A stretch of DNA of 64,000 nucleotides from Podarcis erhardii (Eukaryota): assembly GCA_964252035.1 (NCBI GenBank), contig OZ176206.1; one strand, given 5' to 3'. The notes below the pieces were generated by a model that was not told the DNA's origin, did not search any database, and saw nothing but the letters and a program-made list of their open reading frames with translations. The stretch's first letter is position 1, and every line of letters begins with the position of its first letter. Position numbers and translations under genes: made by a program. Below, piece by piece: positions 3,401-46,012 of this stretch.

Positions 3401-3828
3401 CAGCTTATATGCAATATTTGTTCCCCAAATTCCCCACTACAGTATAGAAAGAGCCAAGGAAGGATTACAGATGAAATTGTTTTGGCAACATTTCACAGCC
3501 TGTTTTCTGGACACAGGGGGGCAGGGGTACCAAGCAACTGTTTGATGGACTTCTGGCATCTCACCTTGTACTTTATAGGCTATTGAGCTACGGTCACCAT
3601 ATTCTGAAGAGCAAAAAAAGAGGATGCTATGACGGCATTTCAAAGCAAATAAATGCAATTTGTCTCAAATTCAGCCCTGAAAAAGAGGACATGTCCTGGA
3701 AAAAGAGGACACATGGCAACCCTAATTTAGCTCATGCCCTAGTCATCCCATCTATTACTAAGAAACAAGTGTGGCCTTTTTGTGTTGATTTTCTCTGGTG
3801 TATGGTATGCAGCTTTGGCTGAGTGGGC

Positions 3829-3835
3829 TTATATA
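3829..3835 (-). promoter_or_regulatory. Candidate TATA box of gene C; decayed homologue near 30800
   Basis: TATATAA on the minus strand within a block (3790-4030) homologous to 30770-31010, each ~0.65 kb past the previous gene's polyA signal. Confidence 0.4.
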
Positions 3836-4489
3836 AAACTTTCCATTGTTATTTTTGGAAAACAAAGCTGCTTTCACACCAAGGAAATTAACCACACTAT
3901 CCAAAGGGTGGTCCTGCCCCTTTCACGAGCTCTACACATCTCCTAGATTTCCTCCTGTCTACTAGTTCATTCACCTATTCCTATAATTACTGTTTATGTG
4001 CACTTCCTGCTTGGGCCAGCTTGCATTGCTTCCATTCCAAATTAAATATTCCTCCCAGTTAAATATTCCTCCCAGTTTCCCCCTGTATTGGCACCCTCAG
4101 ATCTCACACTCTTTGTTACTTACTGCACTGGAGAACATCTGGGCAGAATGGATTGAATGTTCCTTCTGTCATTTTATCTCAATGAGCAACAGGCATCCTT
4201 TATTTATCCAAACTTTTTCTATATCTTCAGTGCTCTGGAACAATGATCCTAACCAGTGCTATTTTTCTAGAAAAACAGGTGCTGGAACTCACCATGAGCA
4301 CCTCCCTCATTCTCTTAGAATGGCAATGGCACCCATCTGGGAGGTGCTGGAACTGAGTTCTAGTGAGTTCCAGCTGGAAAAAAGCCCTAATCCTAACGCT
4401 AGTGACATGTGTGTCATATGAGTGGATCTTGTTTCAGCAATAATGAATTTTATGATTCCTTAGTTGGAACATGAAAAAAACAAGCAAAC

Positions 4490-4738
4490 CATGTGTTTGT
4501 AATTTTCTTTTATTTTTCCAAAGTTGGTGCCATCCTCCAGGTGGGTAGTGGGGCAGTTTTTAGTGTCCTCAACCGTCTATTACAAAGGCAGTAAAATCAG
4601 TTACAGAATTTCCTAGTATGATTAGTGATTGTCTGGTTTCACTTCATTGGATTTGGAGTGGCAATGTGAAACGTTCAGGAGCAAGAAGTCTTCATCAATC
4701 TGGTCCAGGAGTATAGGTATGTTCAGTCCATAGTACAA
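4490..4738 (-). other. Gene B non-coding last exon (3' UTR) with polyA signal
   Basis: Acceptor tttcttatttccag at 4739; AATAAA at 4509-4514 (minus); homologous to 31455-31715. Confidence 0.7.
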
Positions 4739-5220
4739 CTGGAAATAAGAAAATAAGTGTCATGGACTGGTTAGACATGGAGGGATGCTGGGAAGAACCA
4801 GCTGAAGTACCACAAAGGGAAAAATGCCCAGAGCCCAGAGAGTAGTGGTGGGACAATGGTGTGAAGATGAGGTGTCAGTAGCTGAATGGGTAATAGGGGA
4901 GAGTGAGTTGGGAGGGTTTGTGGCAGAGCACAGTTCAGAATCAGAGACAGAAACTGAAGCAAGAGGGTGAAAGGAGAGAGGCCAAGAGGCAGAGATGAGT
5001 CTGCTGCAACAAGCTCCCCTTCCTGCTCATCACTCAAACAGAAGAGGCATGAAGCAGGAGGAGCAAAGACAAACACACAGGCACAGCCTCAGATTGCTTG
5101 GGGGAAACCCTGGAGAGGAAGGGTCTTAAGCAGCTGTGAGGAGGTGGGGGGCCTTCAGTCTCAACAACTGCTTCATGGGGGGCAAACCTACCAGAAATGA
5201 GTTGCTGTGCTCATTAGGCC

Positions 5221-5775
5221 TACAAGACGTAACTGGCTGTACGTTTGAAAAAATAATATATACTATTCATTGTATTGAATTGTAGATTTCAACAGAAGTA
5301 ACTCAAAGTTCAATGAAAAAAGTAGAAGACCCAGTGGATCAGTTCATTCTCTATGCATAAGGTCCATATATGTGAAAGTGTCTATTCTACCTGTCTGTTC
5401 ACAAAGTCCAACAATCCACACGAAAGGTTGTTGCAGTTCCACAGAATCCTTTCACAGAGTCTAAGACAAGGATTTCCAGAATATTAGCCTTGTTTCACCA
5501 TCTTAGGCTTCATCAGTAGTACAAACTCATATATGACATCACAGGACAGTGGATCTTATAGCATAGTAGTAGATGCTGGACTTTATGAACAGACAGGTGG
5601 AATAGACACTTTCACATATATAGACCTTATGCATAAACTGATTGAGAATGAACTGATCCACTGGGTCTTCTACTTTTTTCGTTGAACTTTGAGTTACTTC
5701 TGTTGAAATCTACAATTCAATACAATGAATAGTATACATTATTTTTTCAAACGTACAGCTGGTTATGTCTTGTGT
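5221..5775. mobile_element. Long-TIR foldback/MITE inside an LTR-like insertion (~4758-5918)
   Basis: 5222-~5415 is the near-perfect reverse complement of ~5570-5772. Confidence 0.75.
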
Positions 5776-6551
5776 GTTTATTGAATATGTTTCACGTAAC
5801 AAGAGGTTTGTTGTTGTTTTGTGCTCATTAGGCCTGGCATTCTGCCATTTCTGTGCAGATCATGTTTTTGCTAATTCCAAGTTGCACAGTGTGATTTACT
5901 GTTGTCTCACTTCTGACAGCAAATAACAGAAATTAACCCCAAACATTCCCCAAGAACTAGTGATGAAAATCTTACTCAGTAGGGCATGGAGGGGGAAACT
6001 GCCAATGTTCCTGAACCCCAATCACCATCAGTCCTAGCTAGCAAGGTCAAAGACAATGGGAGTTACCATCCAACAATATCCGGAGGGCAACAGGTTCCCA
6101 ACCCTGACACAGAGACTAGTTCATTTTCTGCAGGCCTTTGGTAGGATTGAGGTGAAGTTAAGCACATTTGAGCCTCACTTAATACAAGAACCATGCTGTA
6201 GCATGTTCACATTTACCTGGGAGCAAGCCATATTGAACACAGTGGGACTTCCTCCCAAGTAAACATGTGCAGGATTGCCAACTTCCTCTAATTCAAGCAT
6301 TGTGGACTTGAGACCCTCCAGAGGTTGTGCTTCTCCCACTCTCATCAGCCTCAGCCAACATGGCCAAGGGTCAAGGATGATCAGAAATGCAATACAACAA
6401 CATCTGGTGGGACAGAGGATTCCCATCCCTGCTCTAATAGTGTAGGCCTTTTGGGGTCCATGGCTCCCTTGTCCAACTTCATTCTTTCAGGGTGTTGGAC
6501 TAGATGATCCTTGTGGTCCCTTCCTACTCAACTATTCTATGAGTCTATTCA

Positions 6552-6917
6552 GGACGCGGGTGGCGCTGTGGTCTAAACCACAGAGCTTAGGGCTTGCCAA
6601 TCAGAAGGTCAGCGGTTCGAATCCCTGCAACGGGGTGAGCTCCCATTGTTTGGTCCCAGCTCCTGCCCACCTAGCAGTTCAAAAGCACATCAAAGTGCAA
6701 GTAGTTTAATAGGTACCACTCCAGCGGGAAGGTAAATGGCTTTTCCATGCACTGCTCTGGGTCGCCAGAAGCAGCTTATTCATGCTGGCCACGTGACCCG
6801 GAAGCTGTCTGCGGACAAATGCCGGCTCCCTCGGCCAGTAAAGCGAGATGAGCGCCACAACCCCAGAGTCATCCATGACTAGACCTAACGTCAGGGGTAC
6901 CTTTACCTTTACCTTTT
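6552..6917 (+). mobile_element. Sauria (Squam1) SINE, full length
   Basis: ggacgcgggtggcgctgtggtctaaacc...(acctttt) tail; TSD atga(g/t)tctattcag; inserted in a CR1 3' end (~6480-6550). Confidence 0.9.
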
Positions 6918-7667
6918 ATGATTCTATTCAGTACTTTTTTTCAAGAATAATAGGTGCCAGAACTCACCACAAAATTGTTAGAGTAAGTCGCTGAGCAACT
7001 TGGGGCAGCCCTGAACAGATGCTGGTTTGACAACAGCCACGTTCACCACCTGTGGAGGTACTAAAAACTATGGTAAGCTGTCTCCACATGTGGTTTGGGG
7101 GTCACTCCTGGTTATGGTACAGGTCAGATAAATGCGCCCCCCGCTCCCTGGTTCTCTAAGGTTTGGGCAGATGGCTAGGGCAGCTAGGAAGGCCCTCGTG
7201 CAAATGTGTGCACATGCAGTAGTAGAGGTCTGGCTGGAAAGTGTAAAGCCCGCTGCTTCTACAGAAGAGGCAGATTTTTAAAAAAAGAAATACAAATTCG
7301 TCCCTCCCCACAGCTTGACCAATTGTGGCTGGGAGCAGCTAGCAGATAGGTGGAGTTATAGATCTTAAAATTGTGTAGACTCACACATGCTGGTCAGCTT
7401 CCATTCTGAATTGAAATGTTTGTTTTGGGCTCCTCAGAAGTATGTAAAAGCAAAAAGTGGACAGGGGGGAGTGCCGATTCACAATGGCTCCCACCTGATA
7501 GGTGCCAGAGCCATGCTCCAGCATGCTCCAGCTGAATAATGACGCTGATTTTATTAATTATTATTGATTCAATTTGTATACTGCCCTTCATCTGTAGATC
7601 TCAGGGCAGTTCGCAACATAATAACACAGATAAACCGTATGTAGATTATGTACATATAAATACTTAC

Positions 7668-7676
7668 AGGTCTTTA
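7668..7676 (-). CDS. Gene B 9-nt stop-codon exon
   Basis: cctgaacag|TAAAGACCT|gtaagt; flanks near-identical to 32257-32400. Confidence 0.65.
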
Positions 7677-10281
7677 CTGTTCAGGCGGATTATGGTTGAA
7701 AAAGAAGCAAAAGACACAAGTTATTTCTCTGTCTCCTTAGTGCACTAAGTAAGTCACTACAGGTCACTAAATGACTAGAAAACAAGAATTTCATTGAAAG
7801 GAAAGAGAGGCTCTCCAGATGAATGCATTAGGTATGCGGAACAGTCTGTTTAAGGCCCTAATCATTTTTTGAACCAGAATTCCTTTTCCCAGACATGCCC
7901 TCCCTTCTTTTTGGTACAATTCTTAAAAGCTGTTCACTTGAACTGCTCTGTCCGAATGCATTAACTACCGTACATCGGTTAATACATCCTTAAATGGGTT
8001 AATCTTCTATGAGATTTACTACATGCTTCTAGGAGCTGATCTTATATGAGAATGTTTTATGTCATAAGATGAAATGCAGACTTATAAGCCTATGGGATTT
8101 GCAGGTCTTTCTTGGCTGATTGCCAGTTCTCTTTGGTTAGCTCATAGTTTTGCTGTTTTAAGCCATAGGAATGGAAATGACTAAGCTTTGATAGAAGTCC
8201 CATGCCAATTCTGGAAAAGGGCAGCTGGCCAATGCTTTGGTGTACCTTGAAATGGTTTGGGAGGATGCCATTGGCTGACCTCAGAAACAGTGGCAGACTT
8301 TGGGCTCCCAAATTTAAGCAGCACCATGTGTGACGCTAAAGTCTGGCGGCATCCCTGTGTCTCATATTCCTCTCTACAGCATTGTTTTGGTGCCCCCTGC
8401 AGTGCAGCACCTAGGGCGACCTCACCCTCAAACCTTCTCTGAGGGCTCTTTGTGATGTTCCCAAGTGTGAAACAGAATAAATATTAGACAGGAGCACTGT
8501 TCCACAGAGAACTCAGCATAAGACCAGAAATTCAGACGTGTGCTTTTCCTCTGCTCTCATTTCTAAAGGGTTGTCCAAGAGAAGAGTTTTGCGCCAGAGC
8601 ATCGGTGGTGAAAAGCTCATTCTGAACCAGTCCAAACATAGGTTAGAGTTCAACGCTGAGCCTATCAAGTGGCAACAGTGACGGTGAAGAGGACTTTCTT
8701 CACCGCCTCTATTGTGTCTGTGGGCAACAGTACTGGGAGACTCCTTCAGGTGACTGGTAATCTAACAGATCCACCTTCACCATCAGGGCCTGGGGAGCAC
8801 CCCAAGATCTCCTGCAGTGATTTTGCAAAGAGCAGCCAAGGATGAGAGATAAGTCACAGTTCTGGACGAATAAATCTGAAGAGTGAAAAATGCTTAATTT
8901 CAGGATGCTGACAGCTGTGGTGGTCATGCATTAATATGTATGTTGACATTGCAAATGATCAAATAAAAGCATATTCATTTTTTAAAATAGAATTAAGATT
9001 GGCCATGTGTTCATTGGGGCAGTGTGTGTAGGATTAAAGTCTTATAGCAGGCATATCCAATGGGTCATGAAAAAATAAAAATAAAAAGGCTAAACAACTC
9101 TGGGGACTGTCCCCCAGATAAAAGAACAACAATTTTTTTGGCACTGTCCCCTTTAAAAAGCTCAACAACTTTGGGCAAATACAATGGGTAGATCAATGCC
9201 AGTTTTTTTATTATATTGGGAGTAGATCGTAGTCTCTTAGAAGTTGGACGTGAATGTCTTATAGCAATCAGAAGATCATATGAATACTTTCCAACAGTTG
9301 TAGGTGAACAGAAGAAGAGGATATGAACAGACCAGTTGACAAATAGAAAGATACAATGACAGATTCCTGTATTGATTCTATCCCTGCTTCTGACAGAACA
9401 CAGCCAACTGTAGGTGAATGAAATTTAGTGGACTATATCTCTGCGACCTTAAATCCTTGGTCTTTGACTGATGGGCGAAGGTCCACTACTGTAGGGATGA
9501 GGAATCAGTTGCTCTTCAGGTGGTGTTGGATTACAACTCCCAGCATCCCTGACCATTGACCATGCTGGTGGGGCTGATGGGATTTGGAGTACAACAGCTT
9601 TTCTGGCATTGCGTATATTGCAAAGAAAATGAAAATGCAGAAACCCACGAAAAAGAACATATACTTACAGGAGATCTCTTTTTTCGAAGTCCCTTCAGGT
9701 GAAAAAGCAAAGCAACATGACCAGTTAATACAATGGCAAACAGAGTACCACTGTAGTTGGTTTTTTCAGTCCACAAAGATACATAATTCCTGAGTCCCCT
9801 ACCCATCCATTTAAATTGTGCTTTCTTTGCAGTAAAATGGAAGGAGTGGAAATAACTATAACACCGATTCCTGAAATCTGTTAAATTGTAGGCGGAGATA
9901 CTAATAATGTAGCATTTTGCAGAGACCAAACTGCTGTGGAATAGAAACAGCACTCATTGTGATGAAGACATGTCAAAATGGAAAGACCGTAGCTGCCTTT
10001 GTTCGTCCCTAGTTCATACCAGGGACCTTCTTGATTCAGAACTCAGCCCTCTAGCACTGGTGCCAACTATAGGGGGCCATGGGGGCCTGAGCAACCATAA
10101 AAATGTTGTGGGTGCTTAGCACCCACATTGCAGGGTCTCCAATGTGACTTCTGGTGCCTCAGGAAGCACCAGAAGTCACTTCAGAGGCCTTGAGGGGCCT
10201 CAGAGGTGAAGTCTGAAGCCTTACAAGGCTGTAGAAATTGTTCTGAGGCCTTGTGAGTCTGGTGCCTCCGGTGGAATGCAA

Positions 10282-10317
<36 letters not shown>

Positions 10318-13300
10318 GAAAAATTAATATAAAAAATACCGCAGGAAAGAATGATTTAGCCATTATTATCTGTGGAAAACCATGACCAGGAACTTCTGAT
10401 TCAGAAATTTAAAATGCAAACAGAAAAAGCACATCTACTAGTGATGCATTGTGTGTGTGTGTGTGTGTGTTTCCACTGTTTAAATTTATTATCCACCCCT
10501 TGCCCTAAGGTCCCAAGTTGGGTTACAACAACTTAAACTTAAGTGATTGCTCAGTCAGAATAACTATTTTAATACACACAGGCAGATTAGCAGGAGAGCT
10601 CCCACCCCTGTAATGTAGAGTTCACAATTATATTTTGCTTTTATATAGCTCTGCTTCACATGATAAAAAGATTCCAAAAATAAATGGGAACAATGGGAAA
10701 TGGTTAGGAATACTCACTGGGAAAGGAGGAGAGGTAGGAAGTCCTCTTCCCTGAAATGAAGAAAGGCACAATTATATTTTACTTTTCTATACTTTTACCT
10801 CACACAATAAATGGATTCATGACATGAATGGACACCATGCAAGATGATTAAGAGCACACACTGGAAAAGGAGAAGGGGCAGGGAGGCCACCACCTCAAAA
10901 TGTCAAAGTGTACCGGAATTTCTTGTTCATATATTTTCTTGTCACGTAATAAACTAAACGGACCCCCATATCCAGCATAGAGGAGTGAAGTTGTTCATGC
11001 AAAATCATTGCCAATACCCACTGGCAAAGTTGTAGGAAAGTCTACTCCAGTCTGAATTATGGACCTATTGGATTACTTCTCATGAATTTTCTACATTTCC
11101 TATAATTTTTATGAAGGTGAACAGTGCATCTGAATTTTCATCAAGAGGCAATGCATTTTTAGAAATAGTAGTTCTTGAAAAAGAGAGTAACATACAAAGA
11201 TCATTAGCATGAGGAAATCTGAGGGAACCAAAATCTGAGGGAATCTGAGGGAACCAAGTCAAACAAAGGCTCCTTATATACAGTAAGTAGATCTAACTGT
11301 ATGACTTAGCTAGTTGCCAATATTAGCTTGTGGAAGTTCATTTCCCGTGCCGCCTATGAACTTGTCTTATAGTATACATTTTCTGATCACCAAGACAGAT
11401 AACCCAGTACTGTTTGCAGCAGCTCTCTAAGTTTTGAGGCTCTACTGCCTAAATTCCTGTCCCAGTCATTGTCCCATCATCCCCAATGAGCAAGGCCAAT
11501 GGTCGGGATTATGGAAGTCAGAGTCCAACATAAGCAGTTCCAATGAGGAACCTGTTCTACGTCAGATGTTGTTGGACAATTCCCAGTAGCTGCAACCAGC
11601 ATGGCTCATGCTCAGGGATAATGGGACTGAAAGCCCATCACATCTGGAAGGCCACAAATTCCCCACTAATTGATGTTGCATTTGGAGACATGCAAGCAAG
11701 CAAGCAAGCAAGCAAGCAAACAAACAAACAAACAAACACCCTGTTACTTTTCAGCAAAACTCATTTAATTCCACCAGAACCAGTGTTTCCATTCAAGATT
11801 TGGTGGTTTGTAGATCCCAAGCGGGACATGTCTAGAATTTTCATCAACAAGATGCCAAGCATTCACTTGCATGCCTGCTTTGCATTATATAAACCCTAGT
11901 CTAATGTAAATAATTGGGAGAAAAGCAATAACAAACCTAGACAGCATCTTAAAAAGCAGAGACATCACCTTGCCAACAAAGGTCCGTATAGTTAGAGCTA
12001 TGGTTTCCCCAGTAGTGATGTATGGAAGTGAGAGCTGGACCATAATGAAGGCTGATTGCCGAAGAATTGATGCTTTTGAATTATGGTGCTGAAGGAGACT
12101 CTTGAGAGTCCCATGGACTGAAAGAAAATCAAATGCATCCATTCTTAAGGAAATCAGCCCTGAGTGCTCACTAGAAGGACAGATCCTGAAGCTGAGGCTC
12201 CAAAACTTTGGCCACCTCATGAGAAGAGAAGACTGCCTTGGGAAAGATGGAGGGCACAAGGAGAAGGGGACGACAGTGGACGAGATGGTTGGACAGTGTT
12301 CTCAAAGCTACAAACATGAGTCTGACCAAACTGCGGGAGGCAGTGGAAGACAAGAGTGCCTGGCGTGCTCTGGTCGATGGGGTCACGAAGAGTCAGACAC
12401 GACTAAACAACTAAACAACAACAACAGTCTAATGTAAATAAAAAGAAACTCTCTACACAAAAGTAATAGGGTATACTCACTCTGGGAGGTGCCCCAACAC
12501 CAATAATCTAAAACAGAAAGCAAGAAACAATTTTTTCCTCATCATATCAAATTAAATGTTTTCTCCATGAACACTCTCTTCATAGCAGTTGGGGGGGGGG
12601 CGGAATTGTCAGGAAAGACTGCATTGTCAGGGGTATCCAATGCTCCTGTTCTGTCAGCACAAGGATTTATACTAGCGCAGTGGAACTTTCTCCCCTCCTC
12701 TCCTGCTGTGTTCCCTCCATACCCTTCCCAAATCCGTTCTGTTCAAGCCAGCCAACCCAAACCAATTAGGTAGGGGCAGGGGGAGTTGCATTGTGCAGAA
12801 TCGAAATGGAACCAGAGACTTAGCATTACTTTGGATATAAGCCATGGTTTTGACACTAAGATCTATGCTATGGGGGTTTTATGTTTGCATTATTCTGGAG
12901 GAGGGACTTAAGGAATTCAGAATCTGCATATTCCATTCAGTTATGCAGGAGAATTTCACTTGGTCAACTTTTAAAAGTGAACCAAAATTGATACTCACCT
13001 CCTGATCAGAATATAACTATATTTTGGATTTTCCACTTCTCCAAATTTGGCAATACTATTCTCAGCTTCAAAAAAATAATAATTCAAAGTTCATAAAGGC
13101 TTAGGATAAAATGGGTAGCATTTCACTAAGTTTTGCTCACAGCAGACACGATGAAATGATTGAACATTATTAACTTGGGTACATTAATCTCAATGAGTCT
13201 ACTTTGAGTAAACCTAGTTGAATGCTGCCCAGTGTGTTTGGAAACGTTTGCCCTGGGATAGCACATATCCTGAAATGCACAGCTTGTGACAAAATAAATA

Positions 13301-16300
13301 ATTAAAAGTGATTTTTCATACCAAAAATCCTGGATGGAACAGATATATGAACGAAGACATGGGAAACATGCACAGAAGGAGACAAAGCTGTCTACCCCTC
13401 ATTCTGATGAGTCAGTAACCTGATCCACACTTGTGCAGAATGGAATGTAGTTATCCATTACTTTTGCAGTTAAAAAAGATTCCAACAATGGCTCTCAAAA
13501 TGTACCAAAAGATATTTGACCACACCATTGGTCCATCTAGCTCAGCATTGTCGACACTGATTGGCTGCAACTCTCCAGGGTTTCAGACAATGGTCTTTCT
13601 CAACCTGACCTGGAGAAGCCAAGGGTTTGCACCCAAAGCTCTTTCAAAGTGTATGAGAATAAATAGGCCTTATACTTTGTTCCTCTAGAAACTTCAATGG
13701 GACTAGAATGCCTGTTATCATTATTGGTATAATTCATGTCATTTCTATACTGCTTGATATTTTAAAGGGGGGGAAATCTCAAAGTGGTTTGCAACATATT
13801 AAAACATCAAATAAAACAATCCAGAATAAAACATTGCCAAAGAAAGCCAGATATAAAGTTCAAGGCAACATTAATAGGAAACTGAAATATTAGCTTAAAG
13901 GTTTCAGAGCATTACAAATGAGGTCAACTAGAGAATGTATATTTAATGCAGCAAAGTTAACCAAAAAAATCTGTTGTTTTAACCTGTTTTGTGAGTGCGT
14001 GTGTAATTGTTTTGTATATGTTTTTATATTGTAAATAACATTGAAATGCCTCATGGGAAGCAATTAATAAATGAAATAAATAAAAAGCACATTTAAGAAG
14101 CATGCTATTTTCATTTCAAATGACCTATGGGTCTCAAGGATGGGGCTTCTAAGGGCTGTTGGGGGGGGGGCGTTATTTAAAAAAGTAGAGAACTCCAGTG
14201 ACCAGGAAAAGGTTAGATCTACAAAGCAAGATCAATCAGTCAACATCCAAATGATTCACAATACTCACATTCACAAGGCCACACCCACTGCCAGTAGCCT
14301 AAAGTTAAAAGCAATTTGTTAGTCTATCATCATCATCATCATCATCATTATCACCACCATTATTATTTTGAAACTGTCTGCTGCAAATCTTGCTTTCTTC
14401 ACATTGGCATGCAAAGTCTGGCACCAGACACTAAGCCCATACATTTGCAAATCAAACCATGCAGTTCATATAGCCTAAGAACATAGGAATAATCCATACC
14501 CTTCAAGTGTCACAATATCCCCGGGGCATTCCAAGAATTACAGAAGCCACCCTGGCTTCTGATTCGATCCTGGAATTTCCCTGGAATCCCATTTCCCCCC
14601 TCCAAGCTCATGGAGCTTACAGCCAGTACTGGCCCTTGCAGTGGTTCTGCACTCTTGCACAAGTCAGCTAGCTCCCGTGAAAGCACAGCACCCAAAGACG
14701 TGCACCCCAATTTCCATCAGAGGATTGTTGGAGGGTGTGAGAGTCCTGCTTTCCCAAGCCTGGTGCTCTCTAATTCCCATCAGCCCCCCAGCCAGCAAGG
14801 CCAATGGTCGGAGAATGATGGCAGCTGCAGGTCAACAGTCGCTACTCATTAGGCCAAAGCTCTCTCCTGCCATTGCTGCCCAGCAGCCGGTAGACAGTGG
14901 CATCCGTAGTGGCGAAAAGGGTGGCACAGGCAGAGTGTTGTTGCTCACCTGGCTTCCTTATGCTGCATGTCGCTTCTGGTTACAGAGAGGTGGAGGAGGA
15001 AGGCAACAGGGAGCTGCACCCACTCAGGGCCGTCTTACCCATAGGTGCGAGGGGTGCGGGGCACCCAGGCACGGGGCTCTCAGGGGTGCCAGGCTGAGAG
15101 TCTGGGGCCCGAGAATTGAGTCTGGGGAAGAGCCCGCCCATTGGTCGGAGCGCCGTGGCAGGCTCTTCTGCTGCGGGCAGCTCTGTGCTGTGAGTTTGGG
15201 GGCGACCAAGCCAGCGAGACTCTGAGGTGGCCGGCTGGCTCTGGCCTCCTGCGCTCCTGGGATTGAGCAACCTGGGGGGGGGCGCGCGCAGGGCGGATCT
15301 TTGCACCCCGGTGCCGCATATGCATAAGACAGCCCTGCACCCACTGCTGCAGCTGTGCCATGCCAAGCACCCCACAGCCATGTCTCTGCGCAAATGAACC
15401 ACCCATAAACATTAACTTCATCTTGCTGGGAGTCAGCTTCATTTACTAATCCCTCATCCAGTCCATCACTGAGCCCAAGCTTCATCAATAGCACTTCCAC
15501 TGCCTCATCTGAAGCTAATGAAAAGGAGAATCAGAGCTGGGTGTCACCAGCCTACTGATACTACCTCTCACCAAACCTCTGGATTATCTAGTTCAGTGGT
15601 TTCATGTAGATGTTAGTCAACATGAGAGACGGGATGAAAGCCTGTGGTAGCCTGAATACCTCAGGACCAACCCGTAGTTTTCCTGCATGGCTTTCTGGAA
15701 ACAGACACCCAGGTATGAGCAGAAACACTAGATCATAATACCCCATATCCCAGATAGCTGGTGCAGATGGTCAAATACTACACATAGCCCCTGAAAGGTC
15801 TAGAAGAATTAGCAAGGTCACTGGCCTTCTCCCAGTATGGATCTATTAAGGTGTCCAAGGCTGTTTTGGTGCAAAACCCAGACAAAACAGTATACAACTG
15901 AATCCAGAAAATGGAGGAAGAGCTTTCCACAGAAATATAATATGAAATACTTACCACTGTAGTCTGGAATCTAGCAATGCCACCTGCCTAAAACAGAAAA
16001 CAAGAAGTCATTGTCTGAAGACGAATCAGAATCAGTATTCAGGTTCTATCTGCAGAAGGCTTGATTGCACACCAGGTTTCAAATACAAGAACACAGACAG
16101 CAGTGGAATGCACTTGAAGAGAAAGATCAATGTGGCAGAATGGTGTTGCATGGCTCCTTTCAAAGCAGAAGTCACCTTACCGCAATGCGTTCCTGTGGGC
16201 AAAGGAGAAGGAGGAGAACGATAACCACAATCTGGGGAGTCATCTTGGCTTCTGCTTGGAAGTCTGTAAACTCTCTGGTGTGAGGCCTGGGTACCTTCAG

Positions 16301-19300
16301 CTGCTCTATTTATGGCTTGGCTCTTTCCAGAAATTGCAGCCCATGTTGCTCAGTGTAAAAGCTCCATTGTCAAGAGGACCAATCTCTTTAGGAATGAGGA
16401 AAGCATAACTTATCACAAACCACCATCAAATGGAAAGGTGTTGTAGATCTAAAAGACAGGGACCAACGGGGTGGCAAACAATAATGCAACCAAGTATTAA
16501 TCATCAGCTAAGCCAAGTTGCTCAGCTTGACCTTTTTCCAGGTATGTGCAGTGAGGTAAGTGCATGGTCCATACACACAACATCCCCCCTTCGTAGTACA
16601 ATTGAGGATTCTCTTGCAGAGTTGGAAAGGTTTGTGGAGGTAAAACTGCAGACAACTGTGCTGTGTCTGGAAATTAGAAATAAGCAGGCAAGAAGCAAGA
16701 TAAGCAGTTGTAAATAGGCCTCCTTGATTAACTATCCCTTAAGAATTTCTGAAGTGCCTAAGGGAAACGAGACCATGGGCAAGAACTGTACAAATCTTCT
16801 TTAAGGTTCCAAGGCCTGTTGTGACAGGGCAATCCCTTGTCAAGCTAATGTCAAGTAAACAGTGTGAACTTAGCTGACTACCATAGCTTCTCTGTGTGGT
16901 GGGCATGACCTTTGGAGCCTAATTCATACTGTAGTGCCAAGTAGGAGTAACTAACGGTGGGAACTGAATCATTTGGTTCATTGGTTTGGGTCACTTGGCA
17001 GCTGGGTCATGGATAGGAAGAGGTGGACACCAATGGTGAGATCCCTGAATCTTCCACCAAAGTATCCTGGGGACAGGATGGGACTTTTCTGTGGTTGCTC
17101 CCCATTTGTGGACTGGTCTCCCCAGGAAGGTTCGGCTGGCAGCTTCATTTAAGCTGCTCTTATGAAGGGTCAATACAGTCTAGGAATACGTGCAGAAATC
17201 AATCATTTGATATACGTGCAGAAATCAATCATTTGATTAGATATTAAAAGGGATTCACTTGGAATTGGACTTTGTCATAGCAAGTCCCATGGGTCAAAAG
17301 AATTCCCTCCAGAGAGATCATTGCAACTGGAAATGGCATTTCACCTCCTCAGGAGACTGAATACAGCTGTCTAGAAGTGTTATAACACTTTAAACCAGGC
17401 ATGTCCAAGTCAGTTTTGGGGGCAGTAGATGTCCTGAGGTAAAATCATAAAAAAAGCTCAGCAACTTCAATACAAGCTCAACAGCTTTGGGGTTAAATCC
17501 TTTAAAAAGCTCAACAACTTTGGGCAGACCTAACACATGTTCAGTTCACCAAATCTGGTTCTCTTTGAAAAAAGTTTGGGCACCCCTGCTTTAAACATTG
17601 TGGCTTTTCCCAAAGAAACCTTGTAGTATGTTAAGGGTAATGAGAGTTGTTAGAAGACCCCCATTTCCCTCACAGCGCTACAGTTCCAAGAGTGCTGTAA
17701 CAATCAACCTCTCTTCCCAGGGAACTTTGGAAACTATTGCTCTCATGATTGTTCAAACTGGTATGATAGTGCTTTAAATATATTGTTGCTGAAGTAGCTT
17801 AAACCCCAGCTCTCCACAAACAAAGGAGAATAACTGCTCAACCAACAGATGAGAATTTTGCAACATCTGCAAGCAAATCAGGGGGGATGTTCAATGAATA
17901 GGTCACCTGGAAACAACTGTAGCTTCAGACGTAGCGACATACATACTAGTCAGTAGACAAAAAGTATGCCTTGAAGGACAAGAGAAGCCACTTAGCTATC
18001 AGGTAGATGTGAAAATATTAAGGGATTTGCTACACTCCCCACTAAATTATATAGAGATGAATGGATGTAGGAAGTTACTTGCTGTAGCCATTTCAGTGAA
18101 AGATAAATATCCCACATGATGAATATCAAGTGAATTGCTTGAGAAACTGCTCCACTTGCACAAGCAAGTTTTGCTGCTATACAGACCATGCCACCAGCTA
18201 GGGAACTTTGGTTTGCCCACCTGGTTTTCTGCACTTCCAAAATGCCAGCCAATATCAACAAACTTAGATGGTTTGAATGTTCAAATACATTACCATCTGT
18301 GCTGCCACTTAAATAGAAATACTTACATGAGCTCCGCCGATTCCAGCAGTCAGCTAAAAACGCAGAAGCAAATTGTTACTTCCTTTGCTTAAAAAAGAAA
18401 AAGAAAAAGAAATGAAAAAACATTTTTTTCAGAAAGTTTGGCAAATGTTGTTTTTCTTCTGGATCACCAGTGGTCAGCACGCTTCAATCAGTCAGTCCGC
18501 TGCCTGTCTGTATTAAATATGCATATTGGTTTTAAAGTCTGACGGGGTGCAGGTGGGGATGGGGAGCCTTTAAAACAAGGCTTGAGTGTTTGGGGTCTCC
18601 TCATCTAAGAGATTCTCAATCTATCTTGCCAATGCAAAAAATAATTAGCAAAATATAAACAAACCATTGGCACAGTAGAAAGGACGTGAAATGTCAAAGT
18701 GCACAAAGTGTTTGCTTGCTTGCTTGCTTGCTTGCTTGTTTTTTTCTTCTACATAGCAACAAATAGAACCTCAATACAGTGGTACCTCGAGTTAAGTACT
18801 TAATTCGTTCCGGAGGTCCGTTCTTAATCTGAAACTGTTCTTAACCTGAAGCACCACTTTAGCTATTGGGGCCTCTTGCTGCCACCGCGCTGCCAGAGCA
18901 CAATTTCTGTTCTCATCCTGAAGCAAAGTTCTTAACCCGAGGTAATATTTCTGAGTTAGCGGAGTCTGTAACCTGAAGTGTATGTAACCTGAAGAGTATG
19001 TAACCCGAAGTACCACTGTATAAAATGGGGAAATTACCCATTATTAAGACAAACACAGCAATTTTACAGTAAGATCCAGTGCAATGAGCAAGCATAGGAT
19101 CTAGCTCAGGCAGTGTTGTACCAACATCTTCAGCTCATTCAGAGATCTACTACTATATCTCTTTCATCTTGGGATAGCCAGGACCCCATTTCCTCCAACA
19201 CTGAAACCAAAATCCAGGACACAATCTTTCAGGATGCGATCTTCCTGGTTTTTTTATCACAAGAGTATAAAGGTCAGTTTGTCATGAACTTGTGTGATCT

Positions 19301-22300
19301 TGCACCTTGGTTCCTCTCCAAACAGAAAAGTTATTTGGGGGGGGTACAGTGCCCATAAATGTGAATTTGGGGGTGTCGTGTGATATTGTCTCCCCCCCAA
19401 TTTTTAAAAGGGGATATCGTGCTGCAAAATCATTAAATATGATATCAACCAAAATGGCCACAGTTCTCTTGCATTAAATTACGGGGTGCCTCAGCTTATC
19501 CAGGGCACTTGCGAGTATTGCATCTTGCTTGCTGAATGTATAGCGGGGCAGAAAGTGCTCCTGATCTAAAAGATCTTAATCTATATTGCCATTTCAAAAT
19601 ATGTAGAAAACATAAACAAAACCATATGAATACTCACTGTCGAAATAGCAACATCCTGAAATGTCAAAGTGCAGAGTTATTTCGTGTTTGGTTGTTAGGT
19701 TGTTTACTTCACATTGTAACAAATGGAACCTCAGTATAAAATGGGGAAATTACCCATTCTTATCCAGACAAACACAGCAATTTTACAGTAAGATCCCCTG
19801 AGAAGAGCAAGCTTAGGATACAGCTGAGGCAAAAAGTTAATGGTTGAGCAGTGATGCACTAATATAACTCCCCATCCTCAGCGCTGTCCAAACTTTGCTA
19901 CTACAGTCAAACCTCAGCTCCCAAATGCCTTCGTTTTGGAACGTTTTGGCTCCCAAATGCTAAAAACCCAGAAGTAAATGCTCCAGTTTTCGAACGTTTT
20001 TCAGAAGCCAAACATCCGATGCGGCTTCCGCTTGAGTGCAGAAAGCTCCTGTAACCAATTGGAAGCCGCACCTCGGTTGTCGAACATTTCAGAACCCGAA
20101 CAGGCCTCTGGAATGGATTACGTTCGACAACCAATGTTTGGCTGTATATCTCTTTCATCTATGGACAGCCATCGCTCCATATACTCCAACACCTTGAAGC
20201 CAAAATCAGGACACATTATTTCTTGATTCCATCTTCCTGGGTTGTTGTTTTTTATAGCAAGGGCACAGTGCCAATAAATGTGAATTTCAGGGTGCCTTGT
20301 GATACTGTGGCTCCCCAAAAGCACTTTTTAAGGGTGAAATTGCATGAGATTACAGCAACCAAAATGGCCGCAGTTCTCTTACAATAAAAAGAACAGAATG
20401 CTCCAATTTTTCCAGGACACTTGCAGGGTATGATAAATTGCTAAAAACATAGCAGGGCAGAAGATGCTCCTGATCTAAGCGATTAATGCAAAATATTTAG
20501 CAAAATATAAAGAAAACCATGTGAATACTCACAGTCAAAGTAGCCGGGTCCTGAAATGTCAAAGTGCACAGTTATTTCATGGGATTTTTTAAAAACTTCA
20601 AAAAGTAACACTATAGTTTCCACTATGAAAGGGGAAATTTGCCCATTGTTAGCGAGACAAACAAAGTACTTTTACTGCATGGTCCACTGGGATGAGAAGG
20701 GGGGAGGGATTGAGGGGATCTCCACTGAACCAGAAAGTTCATGGCTCTGCCAATCTACCTGTAACTCTCAATCATCAGCTCAGCTGGAGATATGCTAAAA
20801 TATCCCCCTCATCCCAGGACACTCAGGACCCCATACCCTCTAACACTCTGAAGCCAAAATCTGGGACACCATCTTTCTAGAGGCCAGCTTCCCATTTTTC
20901 ATCACTAGAGCAGTCGGCCATTTTGGTTGCTATGAACTTGCATAATTTTGCACCATTGTTTCCCCTATCAAAAAAAGTGCTTTCTTGGGCATGGTCCCAA
21001 AAATGTGAATTTTAGGGTGCCACACAAGATACGAAACTGCTTTTGGGGGGAAATTGTGACATGTATTAATGCAAGACAACAGCAACCAAAATGGCCGCAG
21101 TTCGCTGCCAATAAAAAATGTGATGTCCTGGTTTTTCCAAGACGGTGGTGGGGTATGGTACCCTGCTGGCTAGCAGGGCATGTATTGTGGTAGTACAAAA
21201 TAATTAGTTGCACTCCTTGGGAAATATGTAAACTCAATCATGTGAATACTCACTGGTATAACAGCAGGTACAGCTCCAGCCTGAAATGTCAACATACACA
21301 GTTATTTACTGGCTTCTTATTTCACATATTATAAAACAGATTCTCAATATAAAATAGGGAGATTTCCTTTTATTCTTAGCAGACCACCAGAGCAATCTTA
21401 CAGGTAGATCCACTGGGATGAGCAAGGTTGGGATCCAGCAGCTCTCTAGGTGAACTAGAATGTTCTTGACTGAGCAGTGATGTGCCAACATAACTCCCCA
21501 TCTTCAGCTCAGCTGGGGATATGCTACCATATCTCCTTCATCCCAGGGCAACCAGGACCCCATACCATCCAACACCTTGAAACCCACATCCAGGATGGCC
21601 CCTTTCTGGATGCCATCTTCCTGTTTTGTTAATTGCAAGAGCCTGGTGGCCATTTTGACTGCCATGATTTCACACGGTTTCATATATTGACCCCCTCCCA
21701 ATGTGAAATTTGCGGCACTCTGTCAGGCGTGAGGAATTCTCTCCCTCCCCCAATGGCACCAAGAAGCAGGGAGGAAACAGGAAAGTTCTTAGTTATGATT
21801 TATTTCAGTATGACAGTGAAAGACAAAGAATCCAGTCATTCGTTAATGATGGTGTTGCTTGCACTGAGCTCCTCCTCCTTCCCTTTTAGCAACAACACCT
21901 GCCTCTATGGCATCTGTCCATGGTCAACTGCCTGTGCACCCTTTGTTCTTGCACATGTAACAAATGCCACATTTTAGGAATGCCACGTGTCAGCTAGCTG
22001 CTCTGCCTCCCCTCTTCCTTCTCCTAACATCTCCTAACTCTGCTGTTCGCCGGTCTCTGAGCTGTTATCTTCCTCAAAGCTCAGCTGTAACTCGAGACTG
22101 CCTTCCTCTTCTCTGAGAGCTACAAGAGAAATGGGGAGGGTCGATCTTCACCATTTCTCCTCCTCTTCAGTCCAGTCCCTGACACACAGCATGAGATTGA
22201 GCCCTGCTAAAAACACTTTTGGGGGGTAATCACACCACAAAATCATGCAAAATCATAGCAACCAAAATGGTCTCAGTTCTCTTGGGATAGAAAATGGGAT

Positions 22301-25300
22301 GTCCCTGTTTCTCTGGGTCACTTGGGGACATGGGACCCTGCTGGATGAATACATAAGAAGGCCAAAAGTGTTCCCGACCTGAAAGAGTTAGTCTATATTT
22401 CCAATGCAAAATAATAAGAAAAATATAAACAAAACTATGTGAATACTCACTGCTGCAGCAATAATACCCGAAATGTCAAAGTGCACAGTTATTTCATGCT
22501 TTTTTAAACAACAACAACAACTTCACATAGTAACAGTCTGCACACAAGGAGAAGCTCTCCAAATAGATGCCACTGAAAAACGAAATTCACTGCTGTAATT
22601 GAATTTTTGTTATGGTGAGAATAATATTGTCAGCTTGGGTGAAAGACAAACTGCAGTGGAATGCAAGCAGTGCAACAGGACAGAAATCAAGTTCAAGCCT
22701 AACCAGGCCTACTCAGAAGTAAGCCCTACTTAGTTCAAGGGGGTTTTCTCTCATACAAACAGATTTCAGAAAACAGTCTTACTCACTAGTGTTGTGCTGA
22801 ATTTTTCACCAAATTTTATTTTACCATTCTCAATCAGTAAGGCAGAAGCCTCTTCTGCAGGGCAAGAAAAATGTCAGGAAATTGGAGAAGAGGTTTCAGC
22901 CCACCAGTATTACTCACCAACAGGGGCAGAGAACCACCATTAAGGTGTACAGAGTAGAGAACCTGAAAATCCATCAGACAGCATTTCTTCCACCATCATT
23001 TCATTCCATTCCATTCTAAGGCCCTGAGCAATACCCAAACTTCCAAAGTATCAAAGTAAATCTGCTACATTTGTGTTGTATGTTATAGCATTTCTACAGG
23101 GAAAACATACACAATATAGCAAATATATATTTCCCCCACCTGCCATGGATGGTAGAGGTTGGTTTGGAGGGATGGATGCACTCTTCAACCAGATGCTGCT
23201 CATGCATTGATATACAGTGGTACCTCAGCTTACATACGCTTCAGGTTACATCCACTTCAGGTTACATACTCTGCTAACCCAGAAATATTACCTCGGGTTA
23301 AGAACTTTGCTTCAGGATAAGAACAGAAATCGGGCTCCAGTGGCGCGGCGGCAGCAGGAGGCCCCATTAGCTAAAGTGGTGCTTCAGGTTAAGAACAGTT
23401 TCAGGTTAAGAACGGAGCTCCGGAACGAATTAAGTACTTAACCCGAGGTACCACTGTATTGTGACTACACAAACTCTGCTCATTCAATGGATAGGATATA
23501 ACCCTCAAATTCTACATTCCAGTCATGAGTCTCATCCCAGCAGGTTTCAGTAATGCCTATTAGATCATCTTTGCCATCCGGTATTAAAAGCTCAAATTCA
23601 TCTTGCTTGTTTCCTATACTCTGTACCAGTGCTTTTTTCTAAAAAATGTTTAGGGGTACGCTCATTTTCCTACTCATATTGAAATACTGCCCCTCAATGA
23701 GGCCAAACTTAGATTCACAAAATGTTTAGGGGTATGCGTAGCCCGGCATCCCCCCAGAAAAAAGCACTGCTCTGTACATTAGGATAGAGGCAACTGAAAC
23801 CATGAATCATTCCCTCCAGCTGCTTCCTTCTTGCAGTTGCCTGCCCTTTAACAGGTTTCTGCAGCACCACCTCAGTTTCCTATGCATCACTGAAGCTATT
23901 GTCCCAGTACCAGGTGTTCCTATGTAATATGTAATATTGACAATGCCAAATTAATATGTAATATGTAATATTGACAATGCAAAATTATCAGCAATACTCA
24001 CAAATTTGGCAGGAATAATCTAGAAAGTAGAATATTGCAGTTAGTTATTGCTCTTATTTTACATCACATAACTACACCACCATGGGCACAACCATTGGTA
24101 TTTACTGTAATTTGCCGTATCATGAAGGTTCTCAGCACATTTCAGTGTAAAATAAAAATAAAAATCTTACTCCAGGAAGTGACAGTATAAAATTTCACAC
24201 AGGGGAGGCAACAGAGGGAGCAGAGGAAGGTAGAAGGTATGATAAAAGGAGTGCTGATATGAGGCGAATAGGTTCATTCTGTTCAGCTGCATGTTTTTAG
24301 ACTTGTGTTAATGGGGAATTTGTACCATGGGGCTGTGTCAAAGACTCCACAGACAATGGGTATTTTGAGGAGCAATTTGAACCAATAGGAGAGGAAGGCA
24401 ACAATAGGGAGACAATCCATCCATCAGGGAAGCAAGTTGGGAAAAGGGTAGAGTCACTGAACTGGGCAAGAGTCAGGCCTGGGCTGTGAGCATCAAACTG
24501 AAGTGAGCTATGAACTGGAAACTAGAATCCATGGGGCAAGTCACTACTCAAGACTACAAAGTAAGTAGGACCAGGGATGGAGGAGAAATTCACTATTATT
24601 TGCATTTTCATGAGAAAGTTCCTAATCTGTACCTCTTGAACCAATTCAAAAGCCTTCATAGAATTCACACATAGAATTTTCATGAGGTTCCCATCGCCCA
24701 CCCCAGATTGCAGCAGAAGTAAATAGAAGTGAATTTAAAGTTGTTAAATGGAAAACAGAGAGAAACCCACATTTGCACATTCATCCATCTCTAGGGAGAA
24801 CCATAGGACCACAACAGGAGAAATAATCCAGAGATTTGCACCAGTGAGTGAAAATTAGCAGATTGAAAATTACTTAATTTCATGATGCTCTTGCAGAACA
24901 TGCTGGCTGTGGTGGCAGCAATGCACCCCTCTGTACATTGACATTGCAAAAGATAAAATAAAAACATGACAGAATGCAGCCATATCTGTGGGTGAGTGAA
25001 ATTTAGTTCACCACATCCATGTGACCTTAAAGCCCTGGTCTTGGACTGATGGGTGAAGGTCCACTACTGCAGGGATAGGGAATCAGTTGATCTCCAAGTG
25101 GTGTTGGATTACAGCTCCCATCATCATTCCTGATCATTGGCCATGCTGGCAGGGCTGATGAGATTTGGAGTCCAACAACATCTGGGCAGCCACGGATCCC
25201 CCATTTCTATCCTACTATTCAAGTGTTGCTGAATTAAAGAAGAACATGGATACAGTTGATAACCAAGGCTCTTAAGGGAGTCCAGAGCTTCCATGGATAC

Positions 25301-26295
25301 AAAAGGCTTTCTGCTGCCGGACATCAGCCCTAAAGATGTGAGGGCAAGGAAGAATTGCATGACCTTGAAAGTAGGTCTAAATGCTAGACCTTCCAGCTCA
25401 TCTCTGGCATTGTGCATATTGGGGGGGAAAAGGAAAATACAGCAAGTCATGAAAAAGATCATATACTTACAGGAGATCTCTTGCTTCGAAGTCCCTTCAG
25501 ATAAAAAAAGCAAAGCAAAGTGACAAGTTAATGGAATGACAAACAGATGACCACTGTGGTTGTTTTTTTCAGACCACAAAGATATGTAATTCATGAGGTG
25601 CGCCCCCCATTTAAAACTGTGTTTCTTTGCAGTAAAATGGAAGGCGTGGGCATAATTATGGCATTGATTCCTAAATTATGTTTAATAGTAGACAGAGACA
25701 ATAATAATGTAGCATTTTTGCAGAGGCCCAACTGCAGCAGAACAGAAACTGCACTAATTGTGATGAAGACAGGATAAAATGAAAAATTATCCCTTCGTAC
25801 ATCCCCAGTTCACACCAGGGACTTCTTAATTCACAGCTCAGTCCACTGGCTAAAATGCTGCACTGCATTGTAGTGTGTATTCCTTGTGGGGGTTTACAAT
25901 GAAAAGTGGGATATTGCCAGGTCATTTCTGAGAATGAGCCAGGCCAAAATGGTTGCTTAACTGTGGAACAGCTTTATTGTAAAAAAGGAAAAGTCCAGAA
26001 GAAAAGTCACAAAAAGTTGGCTGGATGCCCTGGCAGAGACTGTAAGAGTGGTGTGATTTCACCATTTGCATGAATCCCTGTACAAAGAGCAAAACAACAA
26101 TATATGAATCACTGTTTGGGCACTGCTGTCTCCACATGGACATTTCTGATATTGTAGTAGGATTCTCTTATAATAGTCCTCAGGTACTGCTGAAGGAAGC
26201 ACATTCTGTCATCTACTTGAAGAGAAAGATCATTGTGGAAGAAAGGTGTTGCATGGCTCCTTTCAAAGCAGAAGTCACCTTACCGCAGTGCTTTC
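7674..26295 (-). CDS. Gene B: paralogous micro-exon gene (possibly a pseudogene because of its decayed 5' end)
   Basis: Phase-0 exons: 26284-26295 ESTA; 25471-25494 GLRSKRSP; 24002-24019 IIPAKF; 22918-22962 VLYSVHLNGGSLPLL (less sure); 21254-21280 AGAVPAVIP; 20533-20550 DPATLT; 19638-19655 DVAIST; 16181-16192 ERIA; 15955-15987 AGGIARFQTTV; 14269-14298 ATGSGCGLVN; 12999-13016 LYSDQE (weak acceptor); 12481-12507 IIGVGAPPR; 10718-10750 GRGLPTSPPFP; 9669-9692 GLRKKRSP; stop exon 7668-7676. Confidence 0.65.
9669..9692 (-). CDS. Gene B micro-exon GLRKKRSP (RKKR convertase site)
   Basis: cacctgaag|GGACTTCGAAAAAAGAGATCTCCT|gtaagt. Confidence 0.75.
10283..10320. repeat. (AAAG)n microsatellite
   Basis: Direct reading. 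Confidence 0.9.
11914..12425 (+). mobile_element. BovB/RTE LINE 3' fragment
   Basis: RTE RT C-terminal sequence, (caa)n tail; 16-bp TSD agtctaatgtaaataa at 11898-11913 and 12426-12441. Confidence 0.9.
15025..15337. mobile_element. hAT-family MITE
   Basis: TIR cagggccgtctta/taagacagccctg; 8-bp TSD cacccact. Confidence 0.85.
18777..19018. mobile_element. Tc1/mariner MITE
   Basis: TIR cagtggtacctcg; TA TSD. Confidence 0.9.
19904..20144. mobile_element. Tc1/mariner MITE (second family)
   Basis: TIR cagtcaaac/gtttggctg; TA TSD. Confidence 0.8.
22451..22468 (-). pseudogene. Gene B pseudo-exon GIIAAA (acceptor lost)
   Basis: gacatttcg|GGT... versus gacatttcag in sister units; donor gtgagt intact. 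Confidence 0.6.
23215..23456. mobile_element. Tc1/mariner MITE (same family as 18777, opposite orientation)
   Basis: TIR cagtggtacctc; TA TSD. Confidence 0.9.
23627..23770. mobile_element. hAT-family MITE
   Basis: TIR cagtgctttttt; perfect 8-bp TSD ctctgtac. Confidence 0.85.
25471..25494 (-). CDS. Gene B micro-exon GLRSKRSP (RSKR convertase site)
   Basis: atctgaag|GGACTTCGAAGCAAGAGATCTCCT|gtaagt. Confidence 0.75.
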
Positions 26296-31454: not shown

Positions 31455-31715
31455 CAGTGTCATTGCAATTTTCTTTTATTTTTGCAAAGCGATTGCCATC
31501 CTCCAGGGGGGTAGTGGGGCAGTTTTTAGTGCCCTCTGCCCTCTATTACAAAGGCAACAAAATCAGTTACAGAAATTATCTAAAGTGTACTAGTATGATT
31601 CATGATTCTCTGGTTTCACTTGATTGGCTTTGGAGTGGCAATGTGGAATGCGCAGGAGCAAGAAGTCATTGTCAATCTGGTCCAGGAGCGTAGGTATGTT
31701 CAGTCCGTAATACAC
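31455..31715 (-). other. Gene A non-coding last exon (3' UTR) with polyA signal
   Basis: Acceptor ttattatttccag at 31716; AATAAA at 31475-31480 (minus); homologous to 4490-4738. Confidence 0.7.

Positions 31716-45973: not shown

Positions 45974-46012
<39 letters not shown>

Follow-up and report, generated by a model that had tools for sequence, protein, structure and literature searches.

The DNA analysed here is a 64,000-nt stretch of the genome of the lizard Podarcis erhardii (GenBank assembly GCA_964252035.1, contig OZ176206.1), hereafter the window, which contains no N runs. A reading made earlier from the letters alone, without database searches (the sequence-only reading), had described a chain of very short exons, gene B, as the second paralog of a similar chain, gene A, both of which would carry different peptide ‘cargo’ between fixed processing and termination cassettes. 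On balance, the gene B locus (4490–26420, minus strand) is probably a structurally intact lizard micro-exon gene for a secreted pro-peptide, organized as one transcription unit with two alternative promoter/signal-peptide first exons, called P1 and P2. What carries this interpretation is the observed anatomy of the locus, together with its internal duplications and its pattern of conservation.

The exon chain of gene B

The ten gene B peptides listed in the sequence-only reading are all present on the minus strand at the places it gave, and each of the ten exons (10/10) has an AG acceptor with a pyrimidine tract at one end and a GT(A/G)AGTAT donor at the other. The micro-exons measure 18, 24, 27, 30 or 33 nt, every one a multiple of three, and the gene comprises in total 11–12 exons of 18–33 nt separated by introns of 0.7–2.4 kb. 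Splice signals are distributed unevenly between the strands of the window: the donor motif GTRAGTA occurs 52 times on the minus strand versus 11 times on the plus strand, and a matrix trained on the family finds 47 acceptor–donor pairs at a spacing of 6–63 nt on the minus strand, of which 40 are symmetric, one on the plus strand, and zero to six in five shuffled sequences. The pair count is partly circular because the matrix was trained on the same exons, a reservation that does not apply to the raw donor count. The minus-strand excess of both donors and pairs argues that the exon chain did not arise by chance.

The reading frame points the same way. Joined in order, the gene B exons are free of stops through all 115 codons of frame 0 (four and two stops in the other frames), and the exon chain of gene A has none over 237 codons (15 and 20 in the other frames). 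With stop triplets at their local frequency of 0.048, a stop-free run has a probability of 0.004 for the 115 codons of gene B and ~1e-7 for the 330 cargo codons of the two genes combined. The coding introns of gene B are all in phase 0, and the frame that the ATG exon establishes stays open through to the TGA. Three further candidate exons (22962–22918, 22828–22787 and 13060–12999) were kept out of the model because they lack flanks of the family type; the last two have an AKFGE/KFGE-like stretch in common and may both derive from a single repeat.

Two promoter and signal-peptide modules

The 5′ end of gene B lies further upstream than first proposed. The upper limit of the sequence-only reading, 26295, does mark coding sequence, but the true exon is larger, and the residues at that limit (ESTA) are encoded by the final 12 nt of a signal-peptide exon starting at the ATG at 26349. 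A TATA-like box, CATAAATAGAGC, is followed ~60 nt on by gccaagATG and by the leader MTPQILVTVLLFFLLCPQESTA, which ends at GCG/gtaaggtg. The P1 leader is normal, with a hydrophobic core of 12 residues and Ser/Ala at −3/−1, and its exon fixes phase 0 for all downstream exons.

This promoter and leader exist in a second copy inside the gene. Self-comparison of the window aligns 16112–17126 with 26215–27213 at 91% identity over 1,031 nt, and additional homology reaches as far as 17369/28250. The P2 copy keeps the TATA box, the ATG, an open leader of 21 codons, MTPQIVVIVLLLLLCPQERIA, and the donor gtaaggtg. Identity between P1 and P2 is 95.4% in the upstream sequence, 97.2% from TATA box to ATG, and 88.9% in the coding part of the leader, which also carries an in-frame 3-nt deletion; within the leader core, substitutions are exclusively hydrophobic for hydrophobic. 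The excess of change in the leader is marginal (Fisher p=0.03). In both copies, the position of a TATA-like box ~60 nt upstream of the ATG suggests that the ATG exon is the first exon; a possible acceptor, tttacag, is found 20 nt before the ATG.

The P2 copy also changes how the peptide ERIA is to be understood. It had been listed as a cargo micro-exon, and the residues were located, but they are the last four codons (16192–16181) of the duplicated signal-peptide exon, which has its own TATA box. ERIA could still enter the long transcript as a 12-nt exon, given that a run of Leu codons provides 22/25 pyrimidines ahead of cccacag; the reading frame is preserved with or without these 12 nt. The same pseudo-acceptor is present in the P1 exon, which marks the ERIA acceptor as a by-product of the leader sequence.

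Gene B is thus not the single, simple paralog it was taken for, as two promoter and signal-peptide modules lie within it. Whether these modules serve one transcription unit or two can be judged from what separates them. A sensitive search of 16314–26284 found no remnant of a stop exon or a terminal exon, and neither AATAAA nor ATTAAA occurs on the minus strand from 18327, where the last upstream donor lies, to P2 (16314). With no terminator of its own in the upstream half (26.4–18.3 kb), a P1 transcript must continue into the downstream exons and their terminator. The locus could alternatively be divided into two separate genes, B1 (26.4–18.3 kb), with an unrecognized 3′ end, and B2 (16.3–4.5 kb), encoding a precursor of 70 residues. 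The TATA box, ATG and signal-peptide exon are indeed complete in each half, and B2 by itself is a complete gene model, but B1 is left with neither a stop exon, a UTR-exon (untranslated-region exon) remnant nor a canonical poly(A) signal ahead of P2, and its last donor would need a downstream partner. We regard two genes as improbable.

In the single-unit organization, transcription from P1 (26.4 kb) would yield a 115-residue precursor composed of signal peptide, GLRSKR/SP, six cargo micro-exons, four shared cargo exons, GLRKKR/SP and stop, while P2 (16.3 kb) would yield a 70-residue precursor that has the last four cargo exons and the second cassette only. The features of the locus are collected in Table 1.

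Table 1. Features of gene B, listed from 5′ to 3′ along the minus strand
Feature	Position	Strand	Remarks
P1 TATA-like box, CATAAATAGAGC	26409..26420	-	~60 nt before ATG; upstream promoter
First coding exon, signal peptide MTPQILVTVLLFFLLCPQESTA	26284..26349	-	22 codons; A at -3; donor gtaaggtg; phase 0
Furin-site cassette exon 1, GLRSKR/SP	25471..25494	-	
Cargo micro-exon IIPAKF	24002..24019	-	
Dead sibling exon	22451..22468	-	Acceptor AG lost (catttcGG); donor and flanks retained
Cargo micro-exon AGAVPAVIP	21254..21280	-	Tandem-array unit
Cargo micro-exon DPATLT	20533..20550	-	Tandem-array unit
Cargo micro-exon DVAIST	19638..19655	-	Tandem-array unit
Cargo micro-exon LTAGIGGAH	18327..18353	-	Additional to the peptides of the sequence-only reading
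P2 TATA-like box, internal promoter copy	16303..16314	-	
Second signal-peptide first exon MTPQIVVIVLLLLLCPQERIA	16181..16243	-	21 codons; in-frame 3-nt deletion versus P1; last 12 nt = ERIA
Cargo micro-exon AGGIARFQTTV	15955..15987	-	
Cargo micro-exon ATGSGCGLVN	14269..14298	-	
Cargo micro-exon IIGVGAPPR	12481..12507	-	
Cargo micro-exon GRGLPTSPPFP	10718..10750	-	
Furin-site cassette exon 2, GLRKKR/SP	9669..9692	-	
99-nt stop exon	7668..7766	-	TGA at its start; stops in all three frames
Terminal untranslated exon	4490..4738	-	AATAAA 4513-4508; GU-rich element 4492-4481

Shared modules, diverging cargo and the possibility of decay

The 3′ modules said to be common to the paralogs are indeed shared. 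The stop exon of gene B and its gene A counterpart (32355–32257) are identical at 90/99 bases, which makes it the best-conserved piece between the paralogs (91%), and its flanks are 73–77% identical; in A and B alike, the exon opens with the TGA and has stops in all three frames. The terminal exon, from 4738 to ~4490, is 86–87% identical to 31715 to ~31455 of gene A, an identity that extends ~110 nt past the poly(A) signal, while the intron directly upstream is unalignable (46%). Both paralogs have the AATAAA and the GU-rich element. The KR/SP exons are shared in a narrower sense: an RxKR/SP core of about 20 nt is common to A and B, but the flanks are unalignable, and the overlap of the gene B furin-site exons with the 18-nt RKKRSP exons of gene A is limited to AAGAGATCTCC/GTAAGTAT. 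Within gene B, the two furin-site exons are duplicates of each other, with 22/24 exon bases identical and ~650 nt of flank at 80–83%. The notion of fixed cassettes is therefore borne out by a termination module that is 86–91% conserved amid unalignable introns and by an RxKR/SP exon reused whole; its other half, the swapping of cargo between cassettes, has left no sign. The cargo of A and that of B are unrelated at the protein level, and cargo exons arise in place by tandem duplication and diverge, one of them having died.

Other sequences were noted around the 3′ modules. An alternative exon of 9 nt, cag/TAAAGACCT, likewise begins with a stop. The last exon opens in frame 0 with a stop-free open reading frame (ORF) of 38 codons in gene B (4625–4738) and 41 codons in gene A (31593–31715), which starts with YYGLNIP in both and is 79% identical in amino-acid sequence; its translation would require skipping of the 99-nt stop exon, which would append this conserved tail. 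As a hidden C-terminal domain the ORF was rejected, since its conservation does not exceed that of the rest of the exon. It had no Pfam match, a PDB match at chance level (E 0.77) and no word-search match, and comparison with a set of 1.84 billion representatives gave spurious matches only (a TPR protein and an unrelated repeat protein). A block 350–450 nt downstream of the poly(A) site is 76% identical between the paralogs (3785–4046 and 30752–31020) and either belongs to the old unit of duplication or is a repeat that both loci contain.

The in-place origin of cargo exons is visible in a tandem array of gene B, formed by the exons at 22468 (dead), 21280, 20550 and 19655, with a period of about 0.7–1.2 kb. 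The exon bodies of the array are 50% identical, their 40-nt flanks 78% (upstream) and 74% (downstream), and the deeper intron 52–57%. By Fisher tests, in which the pairs compared are not independent, exon bodies differ from their flanks at p=2e-7 and flanks from the deep intron at p=1e-19. The 21- and 27-nt exons of gene A (43908–52189, minus strand) compare in a similar way when aligned ungapped: their bodies are 47% identical and their 30-nt flanks 82% (upstream) and 74% (downstream), with 31–40% in the deeper intron. Each of these exons also has a CTAAY box, conserved and branch-point-like, near −30, with gtgagtattgtgaaac following the donor. By this pattern, the splice signals of the tiny exons are constrained, whereas the 6–11 codons between them are unconstrained or pushed to change. 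Some cargo-exon flanks of gene B still reach 70% ungapped identity with flanks of gene A (family median 47%), and this residual likeness points to common descent rather than to exchange and fits an origin of all cargo exons in one ancestral unit. The family evolves by tandem duplication of exon-plus-intron units, with selection retaining the splice modules, furin cassette, promoter and 3′ exons, and exon bodies of 6–11 codons remaining free to vary.

Several observations weigh against a working gene B. RNA support, which the sequence-only reading had proposed as a check for each exon, did not appear: no run recorded as RNA contains 7600–13600, and a 1.9-kb contig found in two ‘RNA?’ runs crosses the stop exon and both of its intron flanks with paralog-type differences, which identifies it as DNA. 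Single exons or single ORFs served as queries in the external searches; among proteins of 38–120 residues in a 5.8-billion-cluster set, none shared three 5-mers with the ORF of the AGGIARFQTTV exon. One exon of the tandem array is dead, its acceptor AG having become GG at 22468. The TGA precedes the last exon junction by 96 nt and, by the usual 50–55 nt rule, exposes the transcript to nonsense-mediated decay. The P2 leader has an Arg at −3 of the expected signal-peptidase site, and an intact 63-nt P2 copy, at about 5–11% divergence, is poor proof that P2 is used. Finally, a propeptide of six residues, GLRSKR, stands right behind the leader, and its purpose is not obvious.

Part of this list would also fit a different history, in which all of gene B, or just the upstream half, would be a duplicate of gene A that is decaying and not expressed, its splice signals looking good only through young or gene-converted units. 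The dead exon, the stop position prone to nonsense-mediated decay and the failure of the searches made to turn up a gene B RNA or protein match agree with it, as does the duplication of a promoter into an intron; stretches of 95–99% identity in the promoter blocks could mean gene conversion. Decay is nevertheless unlikely, given that frame 0 is open in all exons, AG/GT is retained in every exon except the dead one, and nothing is broken in the TATA box, the Kozak context, the furin sites, the stop exon or the poly(A) signal. Moreover, the splice flanks are far better preserved than the deep intron within what is an old tandem array, and the introns of A and B have diverged beyond alignment, which makes the A/B duplication old. 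The two related species sampled (runs X6 and X8) are ~1.6–2% diverged, too little for a test; in one of them IIGVGAPPR has become IIGVVAPPR via one silent and one replacement change. In a search for orthologous ORFs in other assemblies, the intron-spanning ORFs of the GLRKKRSP and AGGIARFQTTV exons had no match in the 5.8-billion-cluster set.

Predicted product and comparison with known gene kinds

Read as an intact gene, gene B would encode a secreted precursor. The long model has only two R-x-K/R-R sites, RSKR (residue 25) and RKKR (residue 110), with the cargo between them: after the leader it runs GLRSKR/SP, 79 further residues, and RKKR/SP-stop. Both sites fit the furin-type consensus, and a signal peptide with R-x-K/R-R sites around the predicted product matches the layout of proprotein-convertase precursors. 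The chain was correctly described as Ala/Ile/Pro/Gly-rich, its mature part being composed of G 17%, A 15%, P 14%, I 10% and T 10%, with Gln outside the ten commonest residues of the product. At ~81 residues, the mature chain has a grand average of hydropathy (GRAVY) of +0.57, a net charge of +2 and one Cys; it has no N-glycosylation sequon, and neither the 115- nor the 70-residue model has an SxE motif. The last RKKR is followed by SP and a stop only, as had been claimed, because the GLRKKRSP exon precedes the exon that starts with TGA. The trailing Ser-Pro after the last cut is without a role, which shows that the cassette is reused as an entire exon.

Transcription, promoter use, cleavage and function of gene B we infer from this layout. 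Signal peptidase would take off the leader, and a furin-type convertase would cleave after RSKR and RKKR. The released peptide would be hydrophobic, probably disordered and rich in Gly/Ala/Pro/Ile/Thr, with ~81 residues in the long form or ~43 in the short form, whose chain is the C-terminal 43 residues of the long-form chain. Its exposed N-terminal Ser-Pro would be a possible substrate of an X-Pro dipeptidyl peptidase; such X-Pro dipeptides are removed by dipeptidyl peptidases in other secreted-peptide systems. Our best guess is that a gland or epithelium secretes the product as a disordered peptide of surface-active or matrix type. An elastin-like protein, in which hydrophobic domains would alternate with Lys-Ala cross-linking ones, was considered and rejected: the G/A/P/V/I composition is the sole likeness, the mature chain having one Lys and no KA/KP cross-link motifs.

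No described lizard micro-exon or secreted family was found in the literature, and gene B is best placed by comparison with gene kinds known from other settings. One vertebrate candidate is a divergent P/Q-rich SCPP (secretory calcium-binding phosphoprotein) gene of the casein/enamel type. Genes of this family have phase-0 coding introns, small symmetric exons and an SxE (Fam20C) phosphorylation motif (PMC9122587), with a non-coding exon 1 and the signal peptide in exon 2 (PMC4373244). Gene B resembles them in its many small symmetric exons, which exon duplication has strung together, its all-phase-0 introns, its stop in the penultimate exon with a purely untranslated last exon, and its predicted secreted, disordered product. 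In casein genes, too, the last exon is untranslated. The differences are nonetheless substantial. SxE is absent from both isoforms of gene B, and Gln is rare (with Pro at 14% and a net charge of +2), so that the product is neither Pro/Gln-rich nor acidic. The leader occupies what is apparently the first exon, with a TATA box directly upstream of the ATG exon, and gene B thus probably departs from the exon-1/exon-2 arrangement; a furin polyprotein design with RxKR/SP processing cassettes is foreign to SCPP genes. A squamate SCPP gene is accordingly a very improbable identification.

In architecture, the closest likeness is to the micro-exon genes (MEGs) of the flatworm Schistosoma, which encode secreted proteins in 10–20 exons of 6–81 bp, mostly multiples of three, with introns of 0.1–5 kb, and whose products begin with a signal peptide, contain few conserved motifs, are hydrophobic and ‘sticky’ in composition, and are hard to annotate (PMC10526429). 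Gene B has the same short symmetric exons, long introns and hydrophobic leader, a likeness of architecture only and not of homology; these are flatworm genes, and a sequence relation is neither shown nor expected. Splice-based protein variation is documented for MEGs, whereas furin cassettes, an all-frame stop exon and duplicated promoter/leader modules are not described for them.

Fixed export sequences around variable products are familiar from other secreted families. Amphibian skin-peptide genes are linked with the concept of an ‘export exon’, and in the REST (semenogelin/seminal-vesicle) family the signal-peptide exon and a purely untranslated last exon are conserved on either side of a fast-evolving middle. 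Gene B also has a conserved leader exon and an untranslated last exon around a variable middle, but REST genes consist of three exons, one of them large and variable, and have neither micro-exons nor furin cassettes. The skin-peptide clusters of Xenopus/Silurana are tandem genes with a conserved signal/pro region and dibasic sites, in which cargo diversifies by exon and gene duplication (PMC3731216). They differ from gene B in that their cargo lies in ordinary exons, they belong to another lineage with homology not established, and they function as defence peptides.

A bolder interpretation, which we advance as a speculation with the odds against it, is that gene B is a lacertid-specific vertebrate counterpart of the flatworm MEGs. 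Conserved splice modules of ~30 nt would carry a freely evolving cargo of 6–11 codons, the duplicated first exons would produce two nested peptides, and the 99-nt exon would act as a regulated terminator or poison exon, its skipping adding a tail of 38–41 codons. If expressed, gene B would be among the clearest vertebrate cases of secreted-peptide diversification via chains of tiny symmetric exons, with promoter, leader, furin cassette, splice modules, stop exon and 3′ UTR held fixed around the cargo. Parasite micro-exon genes already have such a fixed-signal, tiny-exon design, and caseins have it in a loose sense. Gene B also illustrates how micro-exon genes slip past annotation, and it offers a testable case of a promoter and signal-peptide module duplicated into its own gene; its practical value is modest until tissue and activity are known.

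The surroundings of the exon chain contain little else that is recognizable. Seven long ORFs of the region, examined for a conventional gene or transposon, matched no Pfam family, no Rfam family reached its gathering score in 1–32500, and no neighbouring genes were identified, the content of the window being the two micro-exon genes only; of an SCPP gene, a place in the SPARCL1-linked cluster would be expected. The introns hold several repeats. A ~250-nt dispersed element, 85–92% identical between copies, occurs in introns of both genes at 18772–19022, 23211–23461 (inverted) and 53618–53851, and the last intron of gene B has an inverted repeat of ~200 nt (5222–5413/5574–5773, 91.5% identity). 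A very high-copy repeat at 11821–12426, with a word depth of 10^6 in the related-species runs, ends 55 nt downstream of the exon 12507–12481, which lies outside it. Beside the exon 10750–10718, the interval 10615–11217 has almost no contig depth in one related species (run X8), a gap that could represent a deletion, divergence or an assembly hole.

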